Shown piece after piece: positions 12,201 to 60,300 of a DNA stretch of 64,000 bases. The stretch's first letter is position 1, and the number at the start of each line of letters is the position of its first letter. The DNA is from Lepidodermella squamata (taxonomy: Eukaryota > Animalia > Gastrotricha): contig JBLDXI010000015.1 of NCBI GenBank assembly GCA_047495785.1, forward strand, positions 3,472,001 through 3,536,000, in the 5' to 3' direction. The position numbers and the translations under genes were made by a program. Below the pieces are notes generated by a model that saw nothing but the letters and a program-made list of their open reading frames with translations, did no database searches and was not told the DNA's origin.

Positions 12201-15200
12201 GCAGATTGTCGAGAGATGATACGCCTGGTGAGACTGTTGCTGTTTTGACCAGCTTTATTGGCGATATTTCCCACGAAAACGGCGGCGATCAGCAGGATCC
12301 AGCGAAAAATGTGGGCGTTCTAGAGGTGGTCCTGCCACCTTCGGATATGCGTTGCGAAGTCACGCTTGGATCACTTCGAATTGACGTTAATCCACAGCTT
12401 ATCAACACCTTGAAAAATCTTACATCGGCATCTAGTGATACGGGCCAGAACGCGGTGAATTTGAAACCAGCGGCTAACACGACGCCTCGAGATACGCCAC
12501 TATCAGTGTTGTTGAAGCTTTATCCGGAACTTGCGAAAATTAAGGTGGATTTAATGAAATTATTATTTCAATTTTCTAATTGTTTTTAATTTCTCTAGAT
12601 TTCACTGTCACTTGTCGCATGCAATCTCACCATTGATGCCGCGCCTGTAATTACTGTAACACTATCTGGTATGTGGTTAATTTATTGGATAAATGGTTGA
12701 AATTTTGTATTTTTTCTTCAGAAATGGTGTTTGAGCAAAATCTATTCGCAAGCCTTCCCGGTTCGTTCGCGCTGCGATTAGCTTGTCGCTACCACAACGC
12801 CGCTGTTTCGAACTGGGAGCCTCTGATCGAATCGTGGGGCGGCCAACTCGCGTGGAGAAATGACGGATCGCATGCGAACGAACTGCTAATATCGGCTACA
12901 TCGGACAAAGTGTTCAACGTGAACATCACCAGTGCTCTTCTTGAACTGATCACCTGGTTGAAACAAAATTGGAACGTTCCTGAATCTCTTCAACATTCGC
13001 TGTAAATATTATTCAGATATATTTAAACTTCGAACTAATCGAACCATTTTTTACATAATTTAGACCTGATGTCACTGCGATTTCGTCTTCATTGCGTTCC
13101 GAGAGCCACCATGCTGTTCGTCCATTCATTCTGGTCAACAAACTCGAGCTGCCCCTCCAGTTTTGTGTCCAGCAATCGGATATGTGGACAACAATTGATC
13201 CTTCTAACAGCGAAAGGCAATCGATCCTAATTGCCGCGCCGAACCAGGAAATCGAATTTGGGGAAAATTTTTGCCCGACTTCATCCCTGAGTTTGGCCGT
13301 GAAAATTACCGGGTTTCAAGCGATTCCTTTGCCTATTCCAGTCGACGCTCTTGGTATCGTTGTTCGCTCGACCTTACCTGAGAGTCTGCCACCTAGGACT
13401 GGGAAGAAGATGTCGAATGCGGTTAATCCGACCAGAATCATATTCCGGGTAACGCTGAATCGAAGGCGGCAGAAAGTTATCTACGCTGAATCAGCTGTTA
13501 GATTGGTCAATCGATTACCGCACGGCCTTGCTCTGACTTTTACGGACAACACCGAGGAAGATCCAGCCACGCTTGGCGCGGTGGTCACCCTTGATACAGG
13601 CGAGTCAGTGCCGCTGCCTTTGGTCAATCTCTACAAGTTGTTGTGGTTCCGGCCTTTAAAACCTGGCATCGGGTTTTGCCGGTCGCCAGTGACCTGGCAA
13701 CACGTCACTCAATCTGGGTTACCGGAAAATGTCCCAGTTTACTGCCAATCGCGGCAAGACAGCCGGCCTTACTATTGCATTGTTTCTATTGCGAAACGGC
13801 AATCGCACTTTTCAACCGATACTTTAACCTCAACATCAGATCCGTGGCATATGATAACAATATCAGCGCCTATCGTCATTCGAAATTTACTACCCTGTGA
13901 TATGAATTTCGAGTTGACCTCGTCATCAGGCCGTAGTGGGGCTCCAGTTGCTAACGACAACTTGCAATCAGGCCGCACGGCTCGTCTTACTGCACTAGAT
14001 GCAGACTCGAGCAGTTTGAGTTTGTCGGTTAAGCTGGATCAATACCCGTACTGTACCCCGGTCTCTGTCATGGTCGGGCGATCAAATTTATTCGTCCTGG
14101 ATGAGGCTAAACGGCCTCTTCGGTTGACTATGTCCACAGAGCGGTCAAGACACGGTGTCCTTGTGGTAAATTAATTAAATTTCGAATTGATCTGATAAAT
14201 TAAGGTGGATTTTTTTTCAGATTCGAATCGAGTGCAGTTATTGGCTGTATAACAACACAAACTTGCCACTGATTTTTCGCCAACATTCCAACTCCTTGCC
14301 TACAATGGACACCAGTCCTTACCAGCCTAATAACTATTCGACATCGTCAGATTCAGAAGAGGGCCATCACGTGATAGCAGCTGGCCAATCGCCAGAGTTT
14401 GAAGTTGCAAGAAGCGTTGTGCCTCTTATGTTCAGTTTCGACGACGAAGAATGGCAATTGTACGTAAAAAATTTAAATTCTTTTTACTGTAATTTTTCTT
14501 CATCAAATATAAATAATATAAATAATACAACAAAATACGTAAATGCTTAGCTGTGCAAGTGTACATCAGTTGAATTTTTATGAATTAGCCGTCTCCAAGG
14601 TTGTGTTTTTTTCTGTCGATATGCGTCCAACGTCATTTTTTAATTGAGCAAGTTGGCGCTGTTTTTCTTGCCACACGCGAAAGACTTGATTCCAATATTG
14701 TTGTTTGACGCTCGTGATCAAACGTTTTCATTCTCCGACTCAAGCACCACCAAGATTGTAGGACCGTTGTGGCTGTAATAAGGCATAGGTTGATCCATCG
14801 GTAGGACAGGGTGTCTAATAATCGGGGTGCTGTAATCGCTTGCAGTTGGTGATGTTTCCACGGGTTGTGCCGCGGTTTTGATGACAGGAGTGCTGTAGTC
14901 GCTAGGTTCAGGAGATTTTTCGGCGCTTTGCCCGGAATGGTGACTCAACTGAGGCGATTCGCTGGGTAGCAGCCGCTGATCATTCTCCTGCGTGGTTTCT
15001 CGGTAAATCGAGCCTCGCCTGCTTTCCTCCCCAGTTGGCGGGACTACTGATCGATCGCCATGGTTATTAGATGCCCAAGTTGAGTGCCGAGGAGCCCATT
15101 TAGGACAGAACATGTGTAGTGCCTTGAATATTCGTAAAATATTATTAAAAAATATATCAATATTGGCAAAAATGACCTCTTGACGGAATCGGGTACCACT

Positions 15201-38750: not shown

Positions 38751-41006
38751 TTTTCCGATTAAAATCTATGAAATTCCATAACAATAGAACAAATAAAAAA
38801 AGAAATTTGTATCATAACAACCGCAATATCATTGAACAGTCCGTAATCAAAAACAAATTCCGCAGCTCATCCATGTCAAGTGAAAAGCATTCTGGCAATA
38901 ATTTAAACGCAAAAATACACGAGATGATGCGCCAGCTGCCAAGGCCTCGTTTTCACCAACTCCGCGCATTTGAATTTGATTCACGTAACGTGGAAAGCGC
39001 ATTCAGATTAGCGCAACGATACATAACACGAGGTAATTAGTCCGGAGATCCTAACTCAATTTTAAGCTCGTATCAAACGCCTGATCTCTCGCTGGTCTGA
39101 AAAACTATAAAGCGCGCTTTCAGAACGACACTTCACATGACAATTGTGTTACAAATTTGAGGTTAATCCGGACATTGAGAAACAATAAGATGACTTTTGC
39201 CATTGTGCAGGTCTAATTGCGCATATCGCTTGATCTTGGCAAATGAAAGGGGATAATAATGACGTTATGCATTAAACAGAACCAATACGGATTGACCACT
39301 GAATATTAATCAGACCAGCTGCTAAATGCAATACGGAAAGTAATCATTGAAACCGACTCTAATAATGGCACAAGAAAAATCAGTGATCATATGTAAGTAC
39401 TGCATATGATTATAAAAAGCCAAGCTGTGAACTGGATTTCACGGCAGACGTTTTTTTAGGAGATGACTCAAATAAATGGTAGAAAGTAGAAATAATTCAA
39501 TCAACACTCAAAGATACAAGGCCGTTTCAAAGCAAATACTTTTTCAGCACTGGACCATTCATCTGTCGCCTAGCTCATTAAAAAAATATTCCATGGCATG
39601 GATGTATTGGTTAACCATTGGAAACGCAAACCCCCCTAAATCGAAAAGTTAACTGAAACATGGTAAATAAAATTATAAACGATAAAAAGCAATTTCTAAG
39701 CGGACTACAATATGATTTATGATGTACGCCATCTCGATCACCCGCATTTAAACCAAGTTATAATAACTCATCTCCTGTTAGCTAACACTTCACTCTTCAC
39801 ATTAGTTCAGCAGAACTGCTATCAGTGTCTAGCGAGGCTCATGACTCAATACGAGAACTTCATTTTCGAAGGCCATCTCAATCATCGCCGCTCAAAAAAC
39901 TTATTAATGCACTATATTGCGCACCACCGAGGCAGTGTCGTAAATAGAGGGTAGAAGGTTTTCGTTTCTAAATCCGGTCTTCTCCTCCCAAAGGGTAATA
40001 GTCGCCATGCCGTGTACAAAAGGGGACTTTTCCGCTTTTTCCAAGAGCACGCATCTTCAAACAAAGCCGGTTGCCAAGACCCAAGACATGCATGACTACG
40101 ATTTACGATTTCCCCCTTTCCTCGCCCACAGTGATACAGAGCTAAGGAGGCAAAATTGCGAGGCGGCTCTCAATTCTAGCTTTTCCTAGCTCCTGGAACC
40201 TGGAACTTCATAATTTAGGGTCTGCATTCTGCATCTTCAGAGCCTCATGGCCCTAGGTCTGAAACTGAACACAATTTGTCATTATTAACACTTCAAGAGC
40301 TGTCTCCGCTCCAGTGGGCGCAGAGATGGGCCTGGTGAGTCCTGGCGGCACTCAGTAGCAACAAACAACGACAGAAATCAAAATCTATTTACGGCTGTTG
40401 ATCTGGCATCGCGGAAATAAGAATGAGGCGATGCAATCCCGTTTACTGTAGAACGAATGAGGTTGCTACCGGTAGTTTTTCGTAACAACTAGCGACAATA
40501 TGTCATTCAGTGAAGAAGGATTATCTGCGATCTGCGATGCGACAAAATTTGAACGCAAGAATACTTATTGAAAAGCCCGTTAAGCAATGCGATTGCCGGG
40601 TGGAAAAAGATCGAGGACAGGCCAACGGAGCCAACGGCCGCTTCGAGAAAACCGACTCTTGACTGGAAGCAAACAAGCAACGCGCGAACTTTTTTAAAAT
40701 TTTTGCAAGACAATAATTATTGTATTGTCAAACACATAATATGGCGCATTTTTATTTCTGATTACTAGTAATTCATATTCAAGGTCTTTTGCGTCATCTT
40801 GGGCGGGCAAACATTTTTTTTGGGCCACATTTCTCGTTTGAAGATGAAGTCCTTTTCATTGAGCTGCTGAGTCGTTTCCTGTTTGCTGCCGGCCTTCAAG
40901 TGTGGGACTAATTTTGAGTGTGATTTGCTCATCGATGACAAAGTACTGAGGAATTGCTCTATTGAATTCATTCGCCACGAATCTCGTGATTCAGTCACCG
41001 TCGAAG

Positions 41007-41963
41007 ATGAACTATACCGAGGGCGTCAATGCTGAAGTTCGGGCTTTATTACAACTGCATCTTCCAGCAGCGCTAAATGAGTTGGAGAATTACATTCTGG
41101 AAACATGCCGGTATTTTGATGTAAAAATACCGGGCCTTAGCGGCTCCGACATGATACACCGCCAAGCGCCGGTTTATTTGCAAGGTCAGCAAAATCAATC
41201 GCATTGTTCCGTCAAATGTGACGGAGTTCTTTTTGGCGCCGAGCTATCCGAAGCCAAAATAACAATTCAGCTTCCAAGGACAGGGAAATCGGCTACTCTT
41301 GCTACCTACCACACAACGATATCTCACGATAGCCCTTATAGGCTGGAGCAACTTCAGGATGCTGGTAATTATATTGCGTCAGCTCTTGCTATTATTCGTT
41401 CTCGGGACCGTTGTCCGAATATTTCCGGAATAACATCGAAGACGACTGGTGTAATAATCACAAGCTCGTCAGTTAGTCCGCCACTATTCGCTTCGTTGGC
41501 TGATGCTTCGGCATTCCTAAACAAGATTCTTCAGTTGTTAATGCGAGGCTTGAACACACTTTGCGCTCCTCCTAACATGCGTCTTACTTCTACTGGCCTA
41601 GTCTCATTAAAGTCGAAGCCTTTAAACCCCCCATTGCCGGATGATTTATGTATTTCATTTCACATTCAAACGGAGAAGTTGGTTCTTACTCTTTATCAAA
41701 TTCCTAGCGCTGTCGTAGCGCAGGCTTTGGCAAGTCAGCAGCGTAAGAATGCAATGGCCATGCAGGCACTACCTCAACCTGTACCAATCGCACCTTCCAT
41801 TCGTCTTCATGTCGATACATCCGTGCCGCATTTGGAACGGCTCATCGCGGAATACAGGCGCGCTGTTGCCGCCTGCCATTCTCTCGTTGATAAAGTTTCT
41901 ATCCTTAGTCAATATACCGACGGAGTGGCAGAAGTGACTCAGTCAGAAATCGTCGCTATGTAA
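41007..41963 (+). CDS. ROGDI: Rogdi (leucine-zipper protein, Rav2-like), intronless, about 318 aa from ATG 41007
   Basis: EVRALLQLHLPAALNELENYILET; VKCDGVLFGAELSEAKITIQLPR; YRLEQLQDAGNYI; LNPPLPDDLCISFHIQTEKLVLTLYQ; VPHLE...CHSLVDKVSI match Rogdi family motifs. The ORF-track start at 40962 is TTG. Confidence 0.88.
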   Translation: MNYTEGVNAEVRALLQLHLPAALNELENYILETCRYFDVKIPGLSGSDMIHRQAPVYLQGQQNQSHCSVKCDGVLFGAELSEAKITIQLPRTGKSATLATYHTTISHDSPYRLEQLQDAGNYIASALAIIRSRDRCPNISGITSKTTGVIITSSSVSPPLFASLADASAFLNKILQLLMRGLNTLCAPPNMRLTSTGLVSLKSKPLNPPLPDDLCISFHIQTEKLVLTLYQIPSAVVAQALASQQRKNAMAMQALPQPVPIAPSIRLHVDTSVPHLERLIAEYRRAVAACHSLVDKVSILSQYTDGVAEVTQSEIVAM

Positions 41964-42288
41964 TATTGAGTGATACACTGATTTTGCTTTCTCTATTCGG
42001 TGTCCTTTTTCCCCGAGTCTTGATTGTGACCATTGGTACTGATAGCTACTCATTTGATATCGACGGGATTGACAACATATGTATCACTCCATGTACAAAT
42101 AAATTTTAATTTCAAGCTCTCAGTTGAAATCCGCAAATGTGAACTGTAATGTCTTTGCAATTTCCATTGCATGAATTAACCTTGTCAAGTGCAATTTTCG
42201 CGACGTTTTATTTTGAACTGCCGTAAATATTAAAAAACAGTCGATCTATATTGTTTTATTTTTAAACTATAGGAAGTTTATTATCAAG

Positions 42289-43035
42289 ATGTTGCGACTA
42301 AACGCACTATCTCGATCTGGCAAGTCCTTATTCTCGCTGCTTCGCCGAAATATGTTTGTCCAGGTTCAAGACACCCCGAATCCGAATAGCCTGAAGTTCT
42401 TGCCTGGCACTAAAATTTTGGAATCGGCAAAGACCATCAATTTCCCAGATATAAAAGCGGCAAGGAGTTCTCCTCTTGCAAAGCGTATCTTTCAAGTTGA
42501 CGGCGTGACAGGAGTTTTTCTCAGCCAAGATTATGTTACGGTAACGAAAGACGATGACTCTGAATGGAACGTTATCAAGCCTCAAATTTTCGCTACGATA
42601 ATGGATCATTTCAGCAGCAATACTCCCGCCGTTCTCGAAAAGGAAGAAGAAGTCAAAGCGCATCCTCAGAGTGACGACCCCGTCGTAGAAATGATTTTAG
42701 AACTCCTCGACACTAGAATTCGACCAACTGTTCAAGAAGATGGTGGCGATATTGAATTCGAAGAGTGGGATGCCGATAACGGAATAGTCAGACTTCGCCT
42801 CCAAGGCGCATGTACCGGTTGCCCGTCATCATTAGTCACGCTGAAAAGCGGCATCGAACAAATGTTGAAATTCTATATCCCGGAGGTTAAAAGCGTCGAA
42901 CAGGTCGCTGCTGATGCTGATAAGCCAGCAATTAAAGACAAAGAAGGCAATGTGAAAAAACATCCAATTGATGAAGAGTTTGAAAAACTCGAGCAAAATA
43001 TTCGCGTGAGACATAATCCACAGAGCAGCGATTAA
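42289..43035 (+). CDS. NFU1: NFU1 mitochondrial iron-sulfur cluster scaffold, intronless, 248 aa
   Basis: Presequence, then MFVQVQDTPNPNSLKFLPG, SPLAKRIF, ELLDTRIRPTVQEDGGDI, GACTGCPSSLVTLKSGIEQMLKFYIPEV. Confidence 0.96.
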   Translation: MLRLNALSRSGKSLFSLLRRNMFVQVQDTPNPNSLKFLPGTKILESAKTINFPDIKAARSSPLAKRIFQVDGVTGVFLSQDYVTVTKDDDSEWNVIKPQIFATIMDHFSSNTPAVLEKEEEVKAHPQSDDPVVEMILELLDTRIRPTVQEDGGDIEFEEWDADNGIVRLRLQGACTGCPSSLVTLKSGIEQMLKFYIPEVKSVEQVAADADKPAIKDKEGNVKKHPIDEEFEKLEQNIRVRHNPQSSD

Positions 43036-43107
43036 TTAAGCCCTGTGCTATTTATAGATAAATTTTCCCCATTTTAATTGTTTATTCGTTGTTTTTAGGG
43101 TTTTATT

Positions 43108-44481
43108 ATGGGCCTTTGTCCATCTGCAGCTGCGTTCCGATCATCCTCGTCAACTGGTGCTTCGTCCTCAGCTTCGCAGAGCCCTGTCTCTCGATTCTCA
43201 GTGGTTAATGTTGACGAATTCGGCCATGATGGTTCGAAAGGCGTACTCGAAATTTACCACGATGTGATAGTTTTAAGGCGGCGGCATACTTCAAATGTCA
43301 CATGGCCGCTGAAATCATTGCGGCGTTACGGCTGTAACGAAGATTTATTCACATTCGAAAGCGGCCGTCAGTGCGATACTGGTCCTGGTGTTTTCGCATT
43401 CCGCCTCAAGCGGCCCGAAAAGCTATTTGCTCTCGTGAAACAGATAATCGAATCCGAAGCTCAAGCCCTGATCGAAGGGACCCGGCGCGGGCAGCAAAAC
43501 GGTGTTAGCACATCTGATGTAGGAATTGTTCTCACTCCGAGTGATGGCGCTGATAGTGGCATTGGTGGAGGAAATTACGTCAACTCGACTTCACCGGCTT
43601 CTCGCCCTTCGTTGCTCACGTTGAGCCGCATGCCAACAACTAACCAAAGCGCGTCGAGTAGTGAGCAGGCGCCAGCAGCCCCGTCAGACCCTGCCGGGTT
43701 TCCAAATCACCTCGAATTTATCGAACCTTCTTCTCGATATGTGACAACTCCCCCTGATGAAAAGCCTCATGTAAGTCGATTTCGAAACGTAAATAACATG
43801 TTATTCAAAGCTTTTTCATTTCGATCTCATTTTCTGCTAAAAATTTCTAATTGGAACTGAAATTTCTCGCGAGGGAGGATCGTTTAAACTAATGGCTTAT
43901 ATGAAATCGACTTCTCTATTAATTAATGGGAATTTTATGTTTAACAGTCGACTTCACGATCTAATCGCCCTGCGCCTCTTAATCTCCTTCAGCCGTTATA
44001 CACTAATCAGCCCGCTGTAAAGCCTCAGGTTGGTAATTCGAATTCGTTTCAGTGAAATCATGAGTTTTTTTTAAATTTTTTTTAGCATCCGCCTCGCTGG
44101 GACTACGTCGATTTGGCCGAACCGACGCCAAACACCCCTCAATCTGCAAATGGCAATGCCCCTGTTGTGATCGGTGGTACGAAATCGATGAGTAGCGTGA
44201 GGTCAACTACGGCGTCGAATTCAGACGCCTCGACCCACTACACCCAGGTCGACATTCCTCGAACAGACGCTATTCGAAACGCGTCAACAGCTGCACCCAG
44301 TTCAGCGGCCCTGCACAGCGCGGCAGGCAGTCATGCCAGCGGAGCGTTCAACTTGCCTTCAGTGAACGGCTCTCGGGCGACCTCTTCGTCGGCCTCGATA
44401 AACAACGCGACCTCGCCTCCTAATAGTGGCAATCATCGTCCTCTGCCGGCCGTCTCTAAGTCGGTCCGCGGTTCTGATTAG
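43108..44481 (+). CDS. FRS2: FRS2/FRS3-like lipid-anchored docking protein (IRS-type PTB); exons 43108-43770, 43948-44028, 44086-44481
   Basis: MGLC N-terminus (myristoylation/palmitoylation-like); PTB FSVVNVDEFG...WPLKSLRRYGCNEDLFTFESGRQCDTGPGVFAF; Grb2-type YVN and YTN and SHP2-type YVDL and YTQV tyrosine motifs in a low-complexity tail; phase-0 GT-AG introns. Confidence 0.85.
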
Positions 44482-45337
44482 CAATCGAATGTCTCCTCCA
44501 CCATATAAATTGTACCTATGTTTATATTTACAAACGTGAAAAAGACTCGCACCGTCGATCATCGAAGATCTGGTTCTCATATTGTTGCTACCGTAAAATC
44601 AAGGAGAAAAGGCCACTTTATATTATATTTCACAAATATATCTTTATTGCTTAAATCTTCCATATTTCTCCGGTTTTAATACATTTAAGGAGTATTACGC
44701 CTTAAAAACAGGACGTTGAGTTGTTGGCTTGTTTATTATTCAAGTATTGTTGAAGTTTAGCGCTTCCGGGATCACCGCAAATTTTTTATCGATTATTACT
44801 ATAGTGGCTAGTGTGTATACTTTTTTGGAATAATACAACGAAACCGGGGTATTTTGCGCGTTTACATGTATTATTATTATCATTATTTTGAAAAAATGGA
44901 CAACGTGTATCGTCTTTCCTTTGACAGCGATAAAAAGAATTGAGCATAAAGACATTCGATAAGTTGTGGTTTGAATTTTTAGCCAACTCTTGACTTCCAA
45001 GAATTTTTATTCTTAATTTTTATCACGTGTTATTATTATTATCTGCTGAAATATCCTCCGAAAATTGTTGACTGCTTGTTTGATTGACTGCTTGCTCTCG
45101 GAATGCTCTATCCTCCGAAAACATTGTTTTACAGCTGCTGATTTTTCTTTATTTGTTGCGATCGCTCTGAGTTGAAAATCTGATCAGATCGATGAAATTG
45201 TTTTACTGTAAAAGTGAAAATATGCTAATAATAATAATAACATTATTCTGCCAGCGGAAGTAAAATGAAGCAAAAATTGTGGGCATAACTATAGTGTAAT
45301 CATGTTGTCATAGATTGTATAATATCCGGAGTGAAAA

Positions 45338-48300
45338 ATGGCGGGGAAATATCAATTCGCGATCGACCGTGGTGGTACATTCACTGACATTTGGGCTCGA
45401 TCGCCTGATGGCCGTGTTATTGTCGACAAGCTGCTATCAGTCGACCCGACGCAGTACACAGACTCGGCTGTTGAAGGAATTCGCAGAATTCTATCGAAAG
45501 TAAAAAGAAATAATTCGAAAAAATCCTCCTTATAAACACGAATTTCTAGGAATTAGGTAAAAATCTCGACCCGGCTAAACCGATTAGTGGCGAGCATATA
45601 GACTGGATTCGTCTTGGCACAACTGTGGCCACTAATGCGTTACTGGAACGAAAGGGAGAGAAAATTGCGGTGTTGGTTACGGAGGGATTTCGTGATTTTT
45701 TGCATATCGGCACGCAAGCGCGACCTGATATTTTCGATTTGAAAGTTGCCATGCCTCCGCCGATTTACGACGCGGTGATCGAAGTCCGCGAACGGGTCGT
45801 CGTTTCTCACCCTGGCTCTGCCGATACGCCCAGGCCGAAAGAAGTCTCAACAACTGGGGAACACGTCGAAATCTGGCAAGAATTAGACGATGAAAAAGTT
45901 CGTGAAGATCTGGCTAAACTCAAGCAAAATCACCCGGAAATCACTGCTCTGGTTGTTGTCTTGTTGAATTCTTATATCTACCCGAAACATGAGCAGTTGG
46001 TTGGCAAGATTGCGAGAAATCTTGGCTTTTCTTCGGTCACCCTGTCGTCTGAAACTGTGCCTATGGCTCGGGCTGTTCAACGCGGCCAAACTGCGTTGGT
46101 TGACGGTTACTTGACCCCTGTTTTACGCCGTCACGTCGACAATTTTCTAGCTGGTTTCAGCGCCGATTTGCCGTCTGAACGTGTGCTATTCATGCAATCT
46201 GACGGCGGTTTAGTCCCGGCGAAATACGCCTCGGGAGCCAGGGCTGTTTTAAGCGGCCCGGCTGGTGGTGTTATCGGCTATGGCGTCGGTATGTACGGTC
46301 GCGAGACGAATTTGCCATTGATTGGTTTCGATATGGGCGGCACTTCTACCGATGTTTCGCGCTACGGTGGCTCGTTAGAATATCGCTACGAGTCTGAAGT
46401 TGAGGGATTGACAATGCAGCTGCCTCATGTTGATATCGAAACCGTAGCTGCTGGGGGTGGTAGTCGACTATTCTTCGTGGCTGGTAAATTGGTCGTTGGG
46501 CCTGAGTCTGCAGGTAAATATTTTTAAATACAAAGTAATAAAAATTGGCAAAAAATCAATCGGACTATTGAATTTAGATCCCAAAATTGTTTTAAGGTAA
46601 CTTGAATCTCTTTCAATCACACAATTTTTCTTTGTTTTTGCGCTTGGAGTGTCCTAATTTGACGAAATTTCACCTAAAATCTGGCTTTGATGATGCTCGA
46701 TTTTTAATTGAATTTATATGATTTTTTGTATTCTAGGGGCATACCCTGGTCCTGCTTGCTACCGACGCGGAGGTCCACTCTGTGTAACAGACGCAAATTT
46801 GATTCTCGGCCGATTGCTGCCCGAATTTTTCCCGCCATCTTTCGGTCCGAATCGAAACGAGCGAATCGACCTGGAAGGAGCCCGTAAAAAGTTTGATGAA
46901 CTGTTCACCGAAGCTAACGAATGGCTGGCTGCGAACCACGGCAAGCAGTTCAAGTCGGTTGAAGAAATGGCTGAAGGGTTTCTGGCGGTTGCGAATGAAA
47001 CTATGTGCCGACCTATTCGTTCTGTTACTCAAGGTAATTTCGAAACGAAGTACCTATTTGTAAATAATTAGGCGTTATATTTTAACCATTTGTACATAAT
47101 TTAAAAAAATGAACTTTGTTTTTTACACGATTTTTTTGGGGTTTTCCTAGTTAGGGTTCGGGTTAGGGTTAGGGTTGCTACGGTCATTCGGTTCTGATTG
47201 TTGAGGCGCCTTGTATCATTCGTGGCCCATTCATTGTGTACTGATCAGGTTTAAGTTCGCAGAATTCTCGCTGCTACTTGCGATCACAGCCGCATTTGTG
47301 TTGTCGTCTACTGATTCTTCCAAGGAAGAAGTCTCAGGTGATAAGCTGTACTTCGTCGTTACTTCCTCATCGGGTTGATCAGCGAGCTATGGTAGATTAA
47401 GATTGTTACCTTTTACCATTTAGAAAAGAAATCTTTCAGATGAACGCAACGTTTTATTCAAGTCGAGTCAGTTTCATAAGATACATCATTAAATTCCTTG
47501 TCATTTCTCCCAGCTATTCATCTTCTTGATCGTTTTCATTGACCTGAAAAAGAAAAATTAGCATTAGTCGCTTTTATTTGAATTCATATCGACAGCATTT
47601 CTTTCGCAGATTATGATTTGTTTTCAAAGTAAGAAGCCCATGTTTTTTCAAATAGTTGTAGCCTTTCTCCAGGCTTGGGCAGTATCGGATAACATTTCTA
47701 GTTTCGAACCTTTGGTTACCCCGTTTCTTTGCCGTGAAAGGCCATGGTCGCTTTGGGTTGGGGTGTTTTAGGGTTAGGGTTGCTACGGTCCTTCGGTTCA
47801 TCAAATTGTGCTAGCTGTTCAACCAAAACTTGCCACCAGCTGACAAGGTTGTCTCGCAGGTTTTTGCCGTTCATGGCGAACATCGCGGCTTACCACGCGC
47901 TAACAAAGTGATCCCTTGGCACGCCCAAGTTGATTTTGCGCAACTGGCGGATTGCTTGATTGCTTAAAATAAGGCGGAGCGCGCTGCCTTGGCTCGGGAC
48001 GATAGCGAACTTGGTCTTCTTGGCGTTGAACTGGTCGGCGCCGAGGCGCATAACGACTGGCTGCCGCCGAGTTGACAAAGTTGTAGCGAAAGCGGCCTGT
48101 GTAAGACCGCCTTGTTGGTTCGTAATTGGCCGATGTAAAGCCTTCATAGTTGTCGGTAACAAAACGATTACGGTGATTCATTTTCAAAAGTTTTATTGTC
48201 TGACTAGTTTCAGTATCTTCAGAGACAATGACAAATTAATAACTTTTTCACCGTCTCAAACTACATTTGAGACAAATTGAGCGAACAGAGTTGGGCTAAA

Positions 48301-51300
48301 GAGCGAAAGACACATTGCACAGAATAATAACAATAATAACAAGGATCCGAACGAAAATGGCTGCGTGGTTCGAGTCGGCGTGAAGCAGCGGAAGCGCGTT
48401 CATTGGCTTGAAGTAGACGCCTGTGCGGATCGAGCCATCTTCATACTTGCGGAGGCGTACGTGCGGTCGGCAATTTCACCATCCTTTGTGTAGTGATTGG
48501 ACTATTGAATCTTTCCACTGCTGCGGAATTGATTTAGTGTCGAAATTCACAAAGCTTATGGCCGCGGATATTTTCACCAAGGCGATTCCTCGTGTTCAAT
48601 TTGAATATTTGGTCAAATTAATTGGATTGAAAGAAGTCGAAACGACACCCTTATCACGATTTATTCTTTAGACGAAACAATTATCTTTTAAAATGTTTAT
48701 CTATTATATTATCGTGACCATCATGATGGCACCAAGTGTGGCTCCGGTAAACGTAAGCGCAAATACCGCCAGCCCAGCTCCAACAACCTTGAGCCATGTC
48801 GGCAACCTTCCCCTCTCGCGACTAACACCAATTACCTTCGGATCTGCCAGTAGTAAATGTCGTGAAATCTAGGCCGAAAAGGGAAATAATACAATGCAAG
48901 TCAACGTTAGCTCAAAAGGTGCTTCGTCAATGTGCGGTGAAGCAGCTGGAGTCACTTCGACTGCCAGCTCTTCAGCAAACTTGAAAGCGACTTGGCGAAT
49001 CCGATCACGCGTCAAGGGCAACCGGTCCACAATCGCCCGTTCTTGTTCCGGTTTGAAGAGTGTCCGCCGGCCACGGGGATGAAGATCGCCGTTTTTCATG
49101 CGCCGCGAAATGGTGTAATTCTTGACACCGTAGACACGTGCGGCCTCAACGCCGGACATGTTCTCCGCCCTTACTTGGGCGACTGCTTGATCGAGGCGAT
49201 CGGCGTAAGGGAGTTCATGCAGAGCGGACATTACAGTTGACTCGAAAATCAGACTAAATTGGAATCAAAAATAAGCGAATGACGATAAAAAGGCTAAAAG
49301 TCATGAAATGCGATCGGACCATGCCGCCCTGGCCATCAGGGCCATTTCGGGCATGTCTGAAACAATCGACCACGTTTTTCCCCGACTCGAAAACATTAAT
49401 TATCGGCAGGTTTGCAGTTAAGGACGAAAAATAGAAATTCGTTGCATAATTGGGGCACTTGCCCTAAATTGCAAAACCCGTTGCGCGCACTTTTCTTCCT
49501 GCACTGTGCTCAATATTAGTGTGCACGACCATCACTGTGCCATCGTGCACACGCACTAGGTCAACAAATTTTATAAGTTCAGAAAAACTAGGTACTATAA
49601 ACTCGTAAATGAAAAATTTCCATCAAAATAAACGAAGGCATCCCAGATTTGTTTCCAGTATTTTCGGAGTTTAGAGTTTAGCACTCAATCCAAACTGATG
49701 TCATTTCAAATTTCATGACAAAATCGGTCCGTGACGAAAAGGCAACTTTAGAAGGATAGGAACCGGAAGATAGGAAAGATAGGATTCCGACAGAGAGCAA
49801 GAAGTTGTTGAAACTATTTGATTTCGATCAACGTTTCAAGGGCGAATCTTGAAACTCACAATGCCGTTGCATATGCAAATAGGGTCCGCTAATTATTTAA
49901 GCGTTTCAAATCGAAATAATTTTGAAAAATATAGATAATTTCTCCAAATTTGCAGAAAAAGAGAAAGTCGATTTAATCCCCTTTGATTTGAATTCGATAA
50001 CTTTTTGTGAAAGGGCGAATTTTTAACCATCGAAAATCAGGTTACCTATGTGGCAGCATATTCATTGTGGAACATAGTTGGAAATTCAATATTTAATCAA
50101 CTGTTTTCATTTAAATTTATTAGCTCGAGGATTGGACGTCGCTAAGCATGCGCTTTGTTGCTTCGGTGGAGCTGGCGCTCAACACGCTGCCTCTGTCGCC
50201 CACGCCCTCGGAATGAAACAAGTGCTTGTCCCTCGCTTAGCTGGGGTCCTCTGCGCTGTCGGCATTGCCCTGGCTGACGTGGTACAGGAACAACAAGAAC
50301 CAGCCGCAATGCTGTACACGCCAGATCACTTCGCTGAAATCGACGCTCGGCTCGAAAAAATGGCCGATGATTGCGTCGCCAAGTTGGTCCCATACGGTTT
50401 CAGCCGTGAAAACATTTCGGTCGAAACTTTTGTCAACCTCCGATACGATCGAACTGATTTCGCAATCATGGTCCCGGGTAAAAATCCGTCAAAAACTGGA
50501 AGTTCGCCGAGAAATGGCGATTTTCTCTCGCTATTCCTCGAATTATACAAAGCCGAATTCGGTTTCACAATCCCCGAGCGGCCTATTTTGGTCGATGATC
50601 TACGAGTTCGGGCTTCGGCGAGAAGTGGCGTATGCCCAGACGCGCAATTCACGTCGAATAACGCGAAAAACGACGCTGCTAAGCCGTTGAAGCCATCTTC
50701 GGCTAAAAAAGCGTGGTTCAATGGAAAATTTCACGAAACACCGGTCTATCAAATCGACGATATGCATGCTGATGTTGACAAAATTTCCGGACCTGCCTTG
50801 ATTGCGTAGGTTTAATTTTTCGATTTTTTCGATAATTTAATTATTTTCTTAAATTTAGGACACCTCATTACACGGTTGTTGTAGAACCGGGTTGGGTCAT
50901 TGAATTGACCTCTCGCGGCAATTTGTTGATGAATGTTGACGCGGCTGTTGAGGAGAATCTTCGAAAAACGAATCCGTTGTTGAATTTGACGGCTGATGCC
51001 CCGCCTGATGCGGCGCTGCTCGCTGTGCTAGAGCATCGTTTCATGTCAATTGCCGAGCAAATGGGCCGGGCGTTGCAGCGAACGGCTATTTCGGTTAACA
51101 TCAAGGAGAGACTTGACTTCAGCTGCGCTGTTTTCGGACCTGACGGAGGGCTGGTGGCAAACGCTCCACATATTCCGGTGAGAATGCTATTATATTTGTC
51201 ATTTGCCGTATTTCCAGTCAACATCGAGACTGTGCAAAAATTGTATTAAAATATTTAATTTAAGGGATTGCAACACCTTTGCAATCTGTGCAATTTTACA

Positions 51301-54300
51301 TAGTTTTTCTGAAGAATACTTTAACCCTCAGCAAATTTATTCTTTTCGTCAGAATCTATTTTATTTCTTCAGCAAACGTATTTTTCTTCTCAAGTGTTAA
51401 TCAATTAATAATTAATAACTTATACTATTAGTTGCAATGAGTTAGAGCCGTTACAACGCGCTTAGCAATTTTATTAGCAGCAATTTAATCGCCTAATCAG
51501 ATCCACATGAATGAATTAATGAATTTATGAACGAATGATTGCATGAATGAACGAAATGACCAGATTAACTTAAATTTGCGCAACGTTTTGCGTTTTTTCG
51601 CCTCCTCGAACTGGCAAGTCCATCGGCTCAGGACTCGGGGCGAACTTCGATCGGGGCCACTTCTGCCATCGGCACTTCCGGAACGTTGAGGGCCGCAAAC
51701 GCTCGGTCTCGTATAGCATCCCTATAACGCTCCGCCATGCGAATGATGTCGTCGTTCAGAGTCAGTGGGAAACTGCCTGCACAAAACGGGTGATTTCCCT
51801 ACGTCCACGAATCTGGCGTTAATTGTAACGCATCAACCCATCCGCCCATCGCGAGAATACATGGCTTCGTTTGTTGGATGTAATGGCATGCCGCGGTGAT
51901 GGTTCTGGTAGTCTCTTATAATTCCGTTTACAAAAGAGGCGAGGCCGTCGACCGTATTAATGTCGCCAACCTGTGTGATGGCCACTAGCTCGAAGTTGAA
52001 AAAATGTTGAAAACCGTTTTCCATTGCAAGTTGTGATGCTCTACGTTTGCTACACACGGCAAGTATTTTTTTCCACTGCACGAGAAATATGCACACTGCA
52101 ACTTAAAACTTGAAGCTTTGTCACTTATAAGCATTATCGATTAATTGTTTGCGGTTGCTGGGTAAATTATTTATGAGTGCGCTTATTGATTTCTATGACC
52201 TCTTCGCGCCGAATCATTACTTCGATACTCTAACATAATTTCCAAGTCACGGCAAGCTAAGAACACGGGGTGTAGTGTTTTTTAATGAATTAGTAAGTAG
52301 GCATGGAATCGCCAAGTTTTGCAATAATCGCTTATTTATTTATTTTATTTATTTATATTTGACTTGCAATTATCGCACTTGCGATTGTAGCAAACAGTAA
52401 AACAGAAAAAGAAAGATAATTTTTCACGTATTACGGCGCCTCACTGACGACACAAGATGTTTATCAATATCAATATTCATAAGAAATTTTTTAAATGAAT
52501 TGAGGCTAGAATTAACATTTTCGATGTTGAAAGTATTCCAAACATTAACAATTCGTCTGTCAAGAGAATATTTTCTGCAGTTCAAATGGCATTCAGATTG
52601 ACGAATGCGATGAAGAGGAGCATATTTGTTGCTAGAAGGCGTAAATAAATCTGTAAATTTAGCGTCAACAAGATTATGATAGAATTTGTAAGTGAAAACA
52701 ATATCTTTAGTGAATCGGCGCTGTTCCAGAGACAACAAATCAAATTTTTTAAGTAGAAAATTATAATCAGATGACTCGTAATTCGACAGTTTCATTAAAA
52801 ATTTTCGCTGAATTGATTCCAGATCATCAATAATCCCGAGATGGAAAGGATTATAAACCGAGGACGCATAGTCGAGTAGTGGTAAAACATAGGTTTTATA
52901 GGCTTTCAAACGAAGATTTCTGCTTTTTAAAGATTTGAGAATACAACCAATCAAATTATTGCACCTTTTCTTTAGTAAACAACAATGAGTCTCGAAAGAT
53001 AGCTCGCTGTCCACTTGAACACCTAGGTCTCGTACACAGTCGACAGTTTCAAGCTTGATACCATCGATATGGTAATCGTATGAAAAGCGACGATGCTCGT
53101 GAGAAATAATTGGAACTGAGCGGGTTCACTATCTTCTTCGATGTAATAATCAGTGACATATGGCGGGGTTTCATCATCCGACACAGCCTTGTGGCACTCG
53201 GCCCAATCTGTGAGTTGCAGCGAGTTCATGGAGCCGTGAAGCTGCAGCGACGCCAACACCTACCTCATTTGTTCGTCGAGCGGATTTTTAGCATTCTTCT
53301 GCTTCTGCCGCTCGCGACTAACTAAGTTTTGAACCTGAGTCAGAGCTAGTAGTTGGTACCTTGCTTTCATATCTTCCCTTGTTTGTTGAACTGCTAAACC
53401 AGCGTGTAAGACTTACTTATTATCCCCGCGGCAGCGCACCGGTGAGGTGGAAGACTGGTCGATCGACGAATTCACTGACTCCTAAGTGTCAATCGATACT
53501 TCCTCTAAGTCAGACATCGCTCATACTCTCGTTAAAATAACGATGAACTCATGCAGATTATTAGGACGACCCCCACCCTGCCCACCCCACCGTTCGTGTT
53601 AGTGATCATGTTGACGTAAATATTTAATGGTCGGGCTGAGGGACGGTAGTGGCTAAGACAGAGAAGTATTTTTGACGAATAAGCTATGCCATGAGTAGTT
53701 TACCTGTTGTTTTAGTGAAGGTCACGTCTGTGGGCCAGTCGATGTGATAAATGATTCCTTCAGCACCGTTTGCTACTCCCTTAATCGAGAGTTGATTAGA
53801 TTTTGTTCGAACTCTTTGACCAAGGAGGAAGAGGTACATGAATGCTGGTAGGTTGTTGGTTAAGTTGTCAGGTAGCTTTGTGATTTCGTTTAAGCATTGA
53901 TAACCGGCGGGATTGCTCGGTTTGATAATTGCGGGAATTTCGAATATCTGGGTGGTTTTTTTTTAATTTTGTTCAAAGCGGCCATGTTTGCGATGTGTCG
54001 CGATGCGTTGTCTGGAAAGACGATTGTCGTCGTTTCTCCGGGAAACATAGCGGCTAGCCATGCTGCCGACATGTTGGGAGTTGGTCTGCCTGTTGAAGGT
54101 TCTACGAATGGATGGCGTCCAATCTCTTCGTCTAGCAGAAGCCAAGTCGTTTCCCCAAGGTTTATCGTCAAACAAGGTTTGTCGCGTAGGACTAGGCAGT
54201 TGTCGTATGTTCACTAGCCGAGTTCAATCATTGACCATCATGTTCGATCGAATCAAGTGAAGTAGTCGCGTGCTTGTCTGCTCGATGATCTTCGACGCAG

Positions 54301-57300
54301 CTATTTCGTATTGGATGTTGAAAGTTTCCTCGAATCCGTCGACCACCGATACGGTCGTTTTTTTCACCGGTGACGATCAACCACGACTGCTTCCGGCGAA
54401 GGTAGCCCTCCATCTGGAAAGCCCAGTCGCCGTAATTCGTGTCTTCATCTAAAATGATGATGTCGGCATCTTGCTATCGTGCTGATAACGTGTTAAATAT
54501 CTAGAGTCGGGATAGGAACGGCAAAGAGGCCTTTTCCATTCACGACTCTAGACCCCACATTTGACACCCGCGCACCCGGCGCGTCTATCATCCAGAACGT
54601 TCGACAAGGACCGCTACGCGGTACTTGGTTGTTTTGACCTGTCTCTTTCCGGGTGCTGCTCACGGCTGCGAATCGAACCACCCTTGTAGTCCCCTCCACG
54701 TCATTGGAGGGGATGATTAACCCCATCTCCCCGTGAAAATGGTTGAAAAACGCGATAATCGTGCTGAACATCTCATACTTGAACATGTTTTATTGTTACC
54801 ACTGAAAATTTTCTCACATCAGCTTACCGAAATAGAAAGCGAAGTATGCAGAGCTGATAAGCATCTCCAAGTGACGAAATAGACGAAAATTCAGCAGATA
54901 TATTGTAAACAATAGGACGAAGCCGGTACGTAGATCTCAGTCACGAAATTACAAAATTATGTCAAAATAAGAACTCAAAATTTATAGGACGAGGCTGGTA
55001 AGCACTCCGTCTGACTAACCGAGAACGACATACGAGAAGTTTGAACTGAGAAAAATCAAGAAATCAAGGCACAAATGCCGCTGGAGCAGCGCCAGCCATC
55101 ATGGCTAGTGCACCACCTACAATTGTCAGCTTGGCAAGGTGCAACTTGCTGAAGTAGGCTGCCCCTCCTTCAACATAGGCGACGGGCTTCGTCCACAGCG
55201 TCAGCTCAAAGCCCCCAATGTGCTCCTCGATGGCTGCCTTGCAGTGGGCGCCGATTTTTTCCACATCTTTCTCTTCATAATCGTGAACGACAGTAGCAGG
55301 TAGCAGTTGCAGGGCCAACGCCTTTAGGGCGAACGGCTCGGTCGCCAGCCCTCAGCGACCGTCGCAGGCGGGGTTGCTACAGGATACTAGCGTACGTGTC
55401 GCGACAACAATTAAAAAAATTTTCCTCGACTCAAGATGCTCGACTGCTCATTTACCTCATAATGAAACCAAATCGATCAACAAAGATAGAGACGGGATTT
55501 TACTCTAAATTCGTATAGGCTGACGAAAGCACAAGTTCGAAAATTAGGGCCGTCGAGATAGTCACAATCAGCAAATTCACAGCCGTCAGAGAGGAACTCG
55601 TAGCCAATTTGAGACGCTATTGGATCTGTATTGGCATGAAAAAGATTTTATTTTGCAACCTTTGCCTCTCGGCACTCGCGGCGCGTTAACTCATGCCCGC
55701 ACTACGCTTTCATAAAAATATAAAAGCCATAACAATATTTCATCACATATGTTATAATTATATATAAAACAGGATATTCTTCAACCCATCAAGAACGAAA
55801 TTTCGTGAAATTTTGCCGTAGATTGAGAATATATCGAAATGTTGTCCACAAAGGTGTACTTTTTCGGGAGTTGATAACAGAGAAAACGCTGACATTGCCA
55901 AGATGAGTAAAACCCTCGCCAATTCGCCAAGGCGAAAGCTGGCAGTGCGGACAGTCGGGCGTTCGCTTGTAGGCGATTGTACTGATCCATCATTCGGCCC
56001 AATCGGGGTGATAGCGCTGCTTGCATTGCAAACATCGAACCAGGGGAGGTTCAATGGCAACTTCAAGGCAGATACAGCAATGAGGCAGAGATTCCTCTAT
56101 ACCGAATTCAAATACTAAAAAAAAGAGCGAATGGCAAGTAATATAAGGGTTATATAAGGGTTAGCTGATAAGGGTTTCACTAGCGCGACAGGCTGAAAGT
56201 ACGAGAAAAACAGAGCAGGTGTTACAGCTAGAATAAAAACCAGCATAGCAAAAACGTCGAATGCTTTCCTCCAAAGCCTTTGTGGCGTTTGAAGCTGAGA
56301 CAAAACGAAACATCCAACGCTGATCGCCATTTTCACAGCGTTATTTGCAGAACGAAAAATACGAAAAATTAATTAATTAATTAATTGAATAAGACATGGA
56401 TTATGGATATTTGGCCGTTGGAAGGAAAGGTTCACTTTAAGGCGGCGTCCAGTTTCAGTTACCGAGCCCAATCCACCCGGGCTGAAGTCGATAGCCGGCG
56501 ATTTGAGTTGCCTATGCGCAATCCTGTTAGATGGTTTACGAGATGATTCATCGAGAGTTTTCGACAGAATTCTGGCCAGTTCCCGTGGGCAAATTTAACT
56601 TGCGGGCAACAGAACTCATCCATTTAGCGCCTGAATGCATATGTAAAAAACCGAGTATATCGTAATTCCTGAAGATTATCGTTGAAAATGATAATCGTTC
56701 GTTTCTCCATGTTGAAAATTCAATCGGTTACGTCAAAAAACGACTCTTATATTAGCATTATAAAATAATTTCTATAAATTCGATTAATTTTTCCAATTTT
56801 TATAAATTTTTTCATTAGGTACATCTGGGATCGATGCAGGACACTGTGAAATTTCAGCTGAAATATTGGCAAAACCGCCCGGCTGATGAGCGATTGAAGC
56901 CCGGCGACGTTTTGCTCAGCAATCACCCAACTGCAGGCGGTGCTCATCTGCCCGATTTGACGGTAATAGCGCCGGTTTTCTTAGACGGCAACGACCCGGC
57001 GTTTTTCGTCGCATCCCGCGGCCACCACGCCGATATCGGCGGCTGCGCGCCTGGTTCGATGCCGCACAACTCGCGAAATATCTGGGAAGAAGGCGCGTCG
57101 TTCATCGCCTTCAAACTCGTTAGCCAGGGCAAGTTTTGTGAGGCTGAGTTGGTCAAAGAGCTCGACGCCCCTGGCCTGAGACCCGGCTGTTCCGGCGCGA
57201 GAAATAAGGCGGATAACATTGCGGATTTGCAGGCGCAAGTCGCTGCGTGTCGCCGGGGTGGCGAATTGCTCGGCGAGTTGGTTGCCGAGTACACGCTGCC

Positions 57301-60300
57301 TGTTGTTCGAATTTACACGGAACACATCCGCCGACATGCCGACCACGCGGTTCGGCAACTCATTCGGCAAACGTCTCAGCGATTTGGTTGTAATCAATTG
57401 AAAGCGGTCGATTGGATGGATGACGGCTCGCGTATTCAGTTGACGGTGAATTTGGACGCTGATAAAGGCGAGGCTGATTTCGATTTCACTGGAACTACCG
57501 AAGAGGTGTATGGTAATTGGAATTGTCCTAGGTAAGTATCCAAATGAATCTGAATTTTTTTTGAATTTTTGAATGAATTTTTCGATCTGATCAGAGTTCT
57601 TGAATCGGATAAATAGAATCTGTCGCCCCAAAATGTAAAAGTTCGCCCTCGTTTCATCTCAGCCCTTATTTTAAATAAGCGCGCCCTCTGAGTAAACAAA
57701 GCCGCCCCGTCGCCCCGCTATTTATTAGTACACTCCGAACACTTGCACCGAGATGAACACTTGATATTGTTTGAAAAATTTAAAAACAGGGTTTCCCCTT
57801 CCGCTTGAAACAACCTTTTTTACACAGACCACAGACAATAAATTCTTTTTGTTATCATTGTCATTATCGTCATCGGAGTCTTTTTGGACGCGCCTGATTT
57901 TGGGCGAATTCGCAGGTGAATCAGCGGGCGGAGGTGGGCTCACAATAGTTTGATCGAGGTCGACTTCGTCAGGGTTTAGATCAATCATCGACCAGGTAGG
58001 CGAGAGGTTGCATAGCCAGAGCACCCTTGGCCAATTTTTTGCGGCCACGCTTGGCCGGCTTTTCAACCTTGGTCAGCCGCTTCTCGTAATTAGAAGGAAC
58101 CGGGCGACCCGATTGTATTTCGAACGCGAGGGAGTGATAACAAACAAATTGTTTGCTAAAAAATCGGCCCAGCTGCCGTTTCTCAGCACGGCGACGTGGT
58201 AGTTAAGCTTGTATTTCACGAAATCGGCCCAGCTTGCGAAACGACACTCAATGGAAGGAAGTCGAAGTCGAAGACGAAGTCGATCACGGCGCCAAACACG
58301 ATAACTAGCACCTGCGATGTTGATCGTACGAATTTTCACAGATTTTTTTTCGGAAATTCCAACGCGCCATGCCAATGATGAAAAGCGACTGCGGCTTGGG
58401 TTTGAAACAAACAGCGTTGGTTGAGATTATTCTGGTCCTTCGATACGACCTAAAGGGGGAAAACCTAAAGCAAAACGCCTCTAGAAGTTTCAGCAACTTC
58501 AACTGTTGTCTGGCGGTCCAAGTTCTCTTGATGTCACGATTGCCGGATTCGTTGGCATTGTTGGTCGAAGGAAGGCCGGGTGCGAAACCCTCATACCAGC
58601 TGTTTCTGTGAACATCGTCGAGCCGATTTGGGCCGATTTTATTCTGATTTTATGTTTCATTCCTTACCTATTCGTGAATAGTATTTTATATTATAGGCAA
58701 CCCTTGTTGAATGACTGAGTAATAGTAATCGGCACCATTTTACGCTAGATGTAGCTGGAGATTCGTTGTAAGACGCGTGAAACACGCAAGTGAACGAATA
58801 GTTGTGAACTAGGACATCGATTTGATAACATCGGGCGAATGCGACTATCGTGCCGTTGTCGCCCCACGATTCGGTATTACTGGCATCGAAACCATTCGTC
58901 AGAGATAGAACTGCAAATGAAGCAGGGAATAGCAACGTAATAGAGATGCCGCGGTTAAAATTTTAGTATGCCGGCCCGAACCGCCGGGCCGGCCCGATCA
59001 CCACCGGAAACCGGAAATAACCGCATTTATTTCACTTTTTATTGAGCCTCTCAACTCTTAATAATTCATCTCATCGCTCATAGCTATTACGTTGTTCATG
59101 CAGGCAAGAAATCGAAGCTTAACTCGCATGAAGAAGCTAAAGCTTGTTCATGCGTATTTTCATCATATCATCGGCTAGTTGAGACTTCGTGCGATTTTTC
59201 GATGGATTTATCACTAGTTTAAGCTGTGAAAAAAACTGTTCAGCCGCAGTTGAGGTCGCCGGTGTCGATAAGATTTTCAGTGCGGATTTGGCGAGTGACT
59301 GCAGCTGATGCCCGCTTGTTGAAGGCTGATCGCCGCCCATCAGTTCAAAATCGTGCTTCGCTTAAGTTGAGAACATAACGATCAATTTAAAATCAATTCT
59401 AGATGGTTTGTTACCTCTTTCAGTTGACGTTGCTGTGGCGGGGCGGTAATTAATACCTGAAAGTATATTATAAAAAACTTTTTGGAACATTTCAACAAAT
59501 TTAAGACATTTCTGGTCATGAGATAATTTCATTTACCGTCAATTATTTTTGTTTGCGTTACTTATAGCACATAAATTCTATTTTTTATTGCAAAATATTA
59601 ACATTAAATATTTCCATTTTTAGAGCTGTTGCTATGTCTGGGGTCTTGTACTGCCTTCGTTCGATGATCGGCTCGAAAATGCCACTCAACGCCGGTTGCC
59701 TCGCGCCGATTCGCATCAAATTCCCAGACGCGTCGCTCCTCTCGCCGAGCCCTGAAGCCGCTGTCGTAGCCGGCAACGTGTTGACCTCACAGCGGGTCGT
59801 CGACGTCGTCCTGCGGGCGTTTCAAGCCTGTGCCGCAAGCCAAGGCTGCATGAACAACGTGGCACTAGGCCGCAGCCAGACGCAAACCAGCCCGGAAAAA
59901 GCTTGGACCTCGAGTTACTACGAAACAATAGCCGGCGGGGCTGGGGCTGGTCCAGACTGGCGAGGCCGGTCCGGAGTCCACGTGCATATGACCAACACCC
60001 GAATTACAGACCCTGAGCTGCTGGAGAAGCGTTTCCCGGTCGTGCTGACCCGATTCACCCTGCGCGAGAATTCGGGCGGGGCTGGCGAGTACCCGGGCGG
60101 GGATGGGGTGATTCGAGAACTGCTATTCCGGGCTCCGACTTCTGTATCACTATTGACCGAGCGGCGTATAACCGAGCCGTATGGAATGGCGGGCGGTTCT
60201 CCGGGCGAAAGGGGCCGCAATTTGCTGATTCGCAAACGGGAGGGGCGTCGGGTGGCTCTGTCGCCGAAAACCGGGTTCGAGGCCGAACCGGGTGACCGGC

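Follow-up and report, generated by a model that had tools for sequence, protein, structure and literature searches.

A putative spliced-leader-resolved operon of Rogdi, NFU1 and an FRS2-type adaptor in the gastrotrich Lepidodermella squamata

Leader trans-splicing and operons are distributed patchily across the animal phyla, and their origins are debated. In the SL2-type operons of Caenorhabditis elegans, unrelated genes follow each other on the same strand, and each junction consists of a polyadenylation (poly(A)) signal, a U-rich stretch and then a splice acceptor, with 3'-end formation coupled to the addition of the spliced leader. The operons of tunicates, known from Ciona and Oikopleura, hold mostly housekeeping genes separated by intercistronic regions that are very short or absent, and use no operon-specific leader. 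The subject of this study is a chain of three genes on the plus strand of the gastrotrich Lepidodermella squamata, encoding a Rogdi homologue, the iron-sulfur (Fe-S) protein NFU1 and an FRS2-like adaptor of receptor tyrosine kinases (RTKs). The chain lies in a stretch of 64,000 nucleotides (nt), contig JBLDXI010000015.1, positions 3,472,001 to 3,536,000 of assembly GCA_047495785.1, which is called the window here and to which coordinates refer unless another locus is named. Judged from its sequence, the chain forms one transcription unit, an animal operon, with a probability of roughly 60%.

Other lineages provide further points of comparison. In the chaetognath Paraspadella gotoi, leader genes are located in the ribosomal DNA (rDNA) clusters, and several leaders exist without operon specificity (PMC12460157); chaetognath operons have been defined as genes less than 250 bp apart (PMC12460157). 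Flatworms, which are the sister phylum to Gastrotricha within Rouphozoa (PMC11660948), possess both leader trans-splicing and polycistrons (PMC12582326). No paper linking gastrotrichs with spliced leaders, trans-splicing or operons was found, and the genome paper of L. squamata mentions neither spliced leaders nor operons (PMC11660948). The mechanism proposed below would be of a known kind, in a phylum for which no published record was found.

The Rogdi homologue (41007-41963, stop codon 41961-41963) and NFU1 (42289-43035, stop codon 43033-43035) are both single-exon genes, of 318 and 248 amino acids respectively, and are followed by the three-exon FRS2-like gene (43108-44481, stop codon 44479-44481). 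From stop codon to next ATG, 325 nt separate Rogdi from NFU1 and 72 nt separate NFU1 from FRS2; direct reading confirms these two gaps, and the 856 nt to the ATG of OPLAH, as the original prediction had reported them. The motifs it had named, namely AATAAA at 42098, GATAAA at 43057, the acceptor dinucleotides at 42271-42272 and 43097-43098 and the AG before OPLAH, are likewise all present at those places.

In the shorter gap the sole poly(A)-signal-like hexamer, GATAAA (43057-43062), ends 34 nt before a candidate trans-splice acceptor (AG at 43097-43098), and hexamer and AG are joined by a T-rich spacer (spacer and acceptor together 43063-43098). Only 9 nt separate this acceptor, which has the top score in the window set, from the FRS2 ATG. 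The junction between Rogdi and NFU1 is built in the same way: ATTAAA (42229-42234), a candidate distal poly(A) signal of Rogdi, ends 36 nt before the candidate acceptor AG (42271-42272), with a T-rich spacer in between (42235-42272 including the AG), and the NFU1 ATG follows after 16 nt. The AATAAA that had originally been singled out in this gap (42098-42103, 168 nt before the NFU1 acceptor) is a possible proximal poly(A) signal in the 3' untranslated region (UTR) of Rogdi. It was rejected as the signal of the junction, as it falls outside the recurring spacing of 26-37 nt described below and ATTAAA fits the layout better. As in the SL2-type operons of C. elegans, same-strand unrelated genes are accompanied by a poly(A)-like signal, a T-rich stretch and an acceptor.

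A relative of L. squamata allows this arrangement to be followed beyond one genome. It is represented by three metagenome contigs, 99.6% identical to each other and belonging to one species, with the best NFU1 match on a 27-kb contig. Its gene order, ERM and VMA21 on the minus strand and then Rogdi, NFU1, FRS2 and OPLAH, is the same as in the window. The stop codon of Rogdi is 170 nt from the NFU1 ATG in this species, and that of NFU1 is 38 nt from the FRS2 ATG, with an ATTAAA that overlaps the NFU1 stop codon itself. These short gaps do not reflect general compaction, because the gap between FRS2 and OPLAH (about 860 nt; 868 nt in the relative) and that between VMA21 and Rogdi (more than 1.3 kb; 2.2 kb in the window) are long in both species. 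No alignment could be obtained between the intergenic DNA of the window and that of the relative and the short spacing has therefore been conserved while the sequence turned over. NFU1 is missing upstream of more distant FRS2-like genes (P0122, P0125), and no further relatives came out of a scan in which alignments of FRS2 and Rogdi were run against metagenome and genome contigs.

With a spacer of only 72 or 38 nt in the two species, NFU1 and FRS2 might be imagined to share a stable, unprocessed dicistronic mRNA, from which FRS2 would be translated by re-initiation or internal entry. This is very improbable, given that the spacer of either species, despite its unconserved sequence, contains a strong acceptor as well as a variant poly(A) signal. 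Moreover, FRS2 requires an exact N-terminal Met-Gly for lipid modification, and the context of its start codon is normal.

An AG near an ATG is common, and the candidate acceptors were therefore scored against a background, as pyrimidine-rich YAG (Y, pyrimidine) no more than 30 nt upstream of an ATG in comparison with all non-coding positions. The FRS2 acceptor stands out in both species, with P of 0.006-0.035 in the window and of 0.01 in the relative, and that of NFU1 is marginal (P 0.06-0.19 and 0.05-0.07). The candidate acceptor of Rogdi itself (40993-40994, 12 nt before the ATG) is weak in the window (P 0.19-0.23) and strong in the relative (P 0.01), where a T-rich acceptor ending in cctAG lies 8 nt before the ATG. 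Fisher combination over the three genes and two species gives p of about 3e-5 to 1.5e-4. In position as well the acceptors agree, with a T-rich YAG 7-17 nt before the ATGs of NFU1 and FRS2 and 8-12 nt before that of Rogdi in both species.

The distance between hexamer and acceptor is also recurrent. Six of seven tight same-strand junctions, four in the window and two in the relative, carry a single poly(A)-signal-like hexamer that ends 26-37 nt before the acceptor AG. Besides the two junctions already described, these are ITFG1-neugrin (ATTAAA, 37 nt) and a junction at 12721 (GATAAA, 26 nt) in the window, and Rogdi-NFU1 (TATAAA, 28 nt) and NFU1-FRS2 (ATTAAA, 28 nt) in the relative; neugrin-Rab11, in the window, is the only one of the seven without this module. 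The module is also absent from the acceptors of Rogdi, VMA21 and OPLAH. Among non-coding AGs, 4-9% show a hexamer in the range of 26-37 nt, and against this background six junctions out of seven correspond to a binomial p of about 6e-6 for a range chosen post hoc, or of about 4e-4 for a range of 20-45 nt with a background of 0.2. An unbiased scan for sites combining acceptor, ATG and open reading frame (ORF) recovered the same six junctions plus one more site. Contrary to C. elegans, where signal and acceptor are roughly 100 nt or more apart, the distance is 26-37 nt here. The compact junctions resemble those of tunicates, from which they differ in that a distinct poly(A)-signal variant precedes the acceptor at a fixed distance of about 30 nt.

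The junction at 12721 is a separate tight same-strand junction of the window (12590-12723), in which a very long ORF extends to 12589. Downstream of it come GATAAA, a T-rich spacer of 26 nt, an acceptor (12720-12721) and an ATG (12724).

The same hexamers can be read in another way, in which NFU1 and FRS2 are separate, overlapping units. Their promoters would then be embedded towards the 3' end of the preceding gene, either a short outron would be trans-spliced off or transcription would start near the apparent acceptor, and the tight spacing would be a sign of overlap and not of joint transcription. This is judged unlikely, since a spacer of 38-72 nt would force promoter, start, outron and branch point to encroach on coding sequence in both species. 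The TATAAA of the relative, about 30 nt before the NFU1 acceptor, is readable as a TATA box; however, the spacing of the hexamers at six junctions, where ATTAAA and GATAAA occur as well as TATAAA, suits poly(A) signals better. Embedded regulatory DNA would, on the other hand, be in agreement with the raised third-position identity at the ends of Rogdi and NFU1 (p 0.036 each). Overall, NFU1-FRS2 is very likely an operon junction and Rogdi-NFU1 a likely one, as far as the layout of their signals can tell.

An operon of this kind requires a source of leaders, and candidates are found in the rDNA. The unit examined, one of 8.46 kb (L008) on contig 22 of the 121.2-Mb assembly of 151 contigs, contains two leader-RNA-like genes (L008 7787-7890 and 8257-8362) in the spacer between the small-subunit (SSU) and 5S genes. 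The pair is apparently present in every rDNA unit. Each gene starts with an exon of 32-33 nt followed by a GT donor (exons at L008 7787-7819 and L008 8257-8288), and the two exons are identical over their first 11 bases and divergent after. The predicted folds show a paired donor and a terminal stem-loop, and leader B has an AAUUUGA Sm-type site; shuffled sequences fold with energies at least as good. The two leader exons have 503 and 538 matches in the genome. No Rfam family matches either gene, rRNAs being the only matches in the rDNA unit; an Rfam scan of the window returned no match, and no leader fragments are present in the window or in the contigs of the relative. The short exon, the GT donor, the Sm-type site of leader B and the many copies together indicate that the genome encodes spliced-leader RNA genes.

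The location of these genes recalls that of the chaetognath leaders, and the presence of two leader genes in the rDNA unit, in a protostome lineage, is a further difference from tunicates. In addition to belonging to a different phylum, the leaders differ from those of C. elegans in having no Rfam family. Flatworm leaders and the present ones are not known to be similar in sequence. The rDNA spacer also holds two copies of a 27-nt motif, CGTCGCCAATGACCAYGTGCATGTGGT, at L008 7931-7958 and 8456-8482. The motif, which may be a promoter element, ends 31 nt before the 5S gene in one case and lies about 300 nt before the leader-B gene in the other.

The existence of this abundant leader system also bears on a model that does without any spliced leader. 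In this model, a nested layout comparable to the cholinergic locus, a single promoter serves the three genes, and a shared non-coding first exon is alternatively cis-spliced to the three acceptors. The 5' exon it postulates is already provided by the leader genes, the hexamers about 30 nt before the acceptors are left without a function, and no candidate for the shared exon was identified. The model does account for the acceptor just before each ATG and the lack of a paired donor nearby, both of which it requires; it is nonetheless improbable.

The use of the leaders, rather than their mere presence, is suggested by retrotransposons. Dozens of dispersed copies of each leader exon do not continue into the intron but into other sequence, joined exactly at the donor. 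These copies form the 5' ends of retrotransposons without long terminal repeats (non-LTR; long interspersed nuclear elements, LINE), with ORFs for a CCHC-type ORF1 or an APE endonuclease, and they have unique flanks and leader 5' ends truncated to a variable extent (loci L013-L072, among them L015, L023 and L028). No fewer than seven element families include some copies with leader A and others with leader B at the identical junction, and every element 5' end begins with A after the leader. The simplest reading is that the leader-bearing copies are fossils of element transcripts that were trans-spliced before being copied back into DNA, so that they indirectly show both leaders to be joined to other RNAs. 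It is less likely that an element inserted at the donor of a leader gene and was then transcribed by read-through from that gene, a possibility for which two such insertions in rDNA spacers (L064, L068) speak.

The seven families found with either leader argue, though not decisively for operons, against strict leader specialisation, and no counterpart of the SL2 specialisation of C. elegans is evident for leaders that share their first 11 nt and are taken by the same element families. No retrocopy of the Rogdi-NFU1-FRS2 locus with a leader junction was found, and the region is single-copy. At the two insertions L064 and L068, in the rDNA spacers of contigs 47 and 76, the foreign sequence starts exactly at the leader-A donor and the upstream flank of the gene is retained. 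A different configuration is seen at L044 (contig 54, about 3855407-3855517), where three fusions of a leader-B exon to one and the same short sequence lie within 110 nt, in direct as well as inverted orientation, and form a small palindromic cluster.

Put together, these elements suggest the following mechanism for the proposed operon. The promoter of the unit would be located in the 2.2-kb region between the divergent VMA21 and Rogdi genes, making Rogdi the first gene, and one precursor RNA would give rise to three mRNAs. Each upstream message would be cleaved and polyadenylated a few bases past the poly(A)-signal variant (ATTAAA at 42229, GATAAA at 43057). About 30 nt past this signal, a spliced leader of 32-33 nt would be added to the next message at the T-rich acceptor (ending at 42272 and 43098), the donor being either of the two small RNA genes of the rDNA spacer, so that the resulting 5' UTRs would consist of the leader and 9-16 nt. 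The T-rich stretch of about 30 nt between signal and acceptor probably has two functions, that of the poly(A) downstream element and that of the polypyrimidine tract, and this dual role would couple 3'-end formation to leader addition, much as in nematode operons but with the compactness of those of tunicates. What we infer from the signals in the DNA is the addition of leaders at 42273 and 43099, the use of the poly(A) sites, the joint transcription of the three genes and the coupling itself.

Several observations weigh against this interpretation. Over the entire 20-kb neighbourhood the two species are collinear, and gene order alone is for this reason not specific to an operon. The acceptors of Rogdi and NFU1 are not individually distinctive in the window, and the spacing statistic comes from seven junctions, with a range set after seeing the data, in a sample made of the window and one 20-kb contig of the relative. 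Synonymous sites are somewhat more conserved, in comparison with the relative, in the last 40-48 codons of Rogdi (41847-41960) and NFU1 (42890-43032): third-position identity is 12/19 at the end of Rogdi and 47/123 in the rest of the gene, and 19/27 and 63/128 respectively in NFU1 (p 0.036 each), for end windows picked after inspecting the data. This conservation could correspond to processing signals or, equally, to an internal promoter of the next gene. In addition, signalling and developmental genes are depleted from chaetognath operons (PMC12460157). The searchable collections contain no transcript of Rogdi, NFU1 or FRS2. Exact-product look-ups in them gave no match for NFU1, Rogdi and ITFG1, nor for eight further ORFs of the window, and homologue searches with NFU1, with exon 1 of FRS2 and with the C-terminal 100 amino acids of NFU1 retrieved no protein of the same species. 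The one public transcriptome of the species, from adults, is SRR1273732 (PMC11660948).

As regards the genes themselves, the identities given by the original prediction to Rogdi, NFU1, FRS2 and OPLAH are borne out by their Pfam domains, with the choice of FRS2 over Dok resting on the match of the PTB domain. The Rogdi homologue carries the Rogdi_lz domain (E 7e-13) and shares 45-51% identity with its counterpart in the relative. NFU1 contains Nfu_N (E 4e-32) and NifU (E 3e-27) domains, an N-terminus resembling a mitochondrial presequence and, by direct reading, a CxxC motif in the form CTGC. The protein is 69% identical to NFU1 of the relative and has further homologues across animals. The combination of Nfu_N with a NifU domain holding CxxC fits the class of mitochondrial Fe-S scaffolds.

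The exon model of the FRS2-like gene was drawn by eye from GT..AG sites and the reading frame, and the same three-exon structure is found in the relative, with about 50% identity between the proteins. Exon 1 (43108-43770, donor GTAAGT at 43771) encodes the MGLCPS start and an IRS-type PTB domain (E 5e-17). Exon 2 (43948-44028, direct reading) comprises 27 codons and includes a Y-x-N motif that the relative retains, and exon 3 (44086-44481) runs to the stop codon; in the tblastn comparison with the relative, exon 3 is matched at 36% identity over 89 amino acids, and exon 2 is not matched. Homology searches for this gene used exon 1 only, in a query that ran 6 nt into the intron. The nearest solved structures to the PTB domain are those of FRS2 and FRS3 (E about 3e-21), with Dok far behind (8e-11). 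Both the MGLCPS start, which is of the myristoylation/palmitoylation type, and the core of the PTB domain are invariant in the relative. The Grb2-type Y-x-N motifs, by direct reading, are YVN and YTN, the latter appearing as YAN in the relative. By its Met-Gly start, its FRS2/FRS3-nearest PTB domain and its Y-x-N motifs, the sequence identifies the third gene as a true FRS2-type adaptor.

The next gene on the plus strand is OPLAH (ATG at 45338), which has Hydantoinase domains in Pfam. The operon reading of the original prediction, which finds support in the tight chain kept in the relative, in the leader-RNA genes and in the layout of the junctions, had included a possible extension to this gene, and that part is not supported. 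The acceptor-like AG at 45312-45313, 24 nt before the ATG, has a P of 0.13-0.19; the gap is of 856 nt in the window and 868 nt in the relative, and no hexamer lies at the junction distance in either species. With its nearest poly(A)-signal-like hexamer ending 47 nt before the AG, in addition to the 856-nt gap, OPLAH was rejected as a member of the unit and is probably a separate gene or unit. Its introns in the window measure 2-5.6 kb (47033-50122, 51187-56818 and 57542-59621), in a genome that is for this reason not uniformly compact; the gene of the relative is nearly uninterrupted, with about two short introns. The long introns may hold inserted elements.

Among the systems compared, the RTK adaptor as last gene, known here from DNA alone, sets the chain apart from the operons of chaetognaths, and the expression of such an adaptor from a housekeeping unit would be unusual for operons. 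The locus contributes a junction of 38-72 nt conserved between species, a testable rule of signal, about 30 nt and acceptor, and evidence, drawn from DNA only, for the use of both leaders. Annotation is affected as well, in that programs for gene prediction which presuppose a promoter and a 5' UTR may merge such genes or place their starts wrongly. More tentatively, and with the odds somewhat against it, gastrotrichs may have an operon type of their own, characterised by a fixed and ultra-short junction, in which a U-rich RNA segment of about 30 nt with a dual role links the poly(A) signal to the leader acceptor, and by two interchangeable leaders encoded in the rDNA. In such operons the position of the junction would be conserved while its sequence turns over, and an RTK adaptor could be held under housekeeping co-transcription. 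If this were true, the sister relationship of flatworms and gastrotrichs would make it relevant to the question of an ancestral leader trans-splicing in Rouphozoa.

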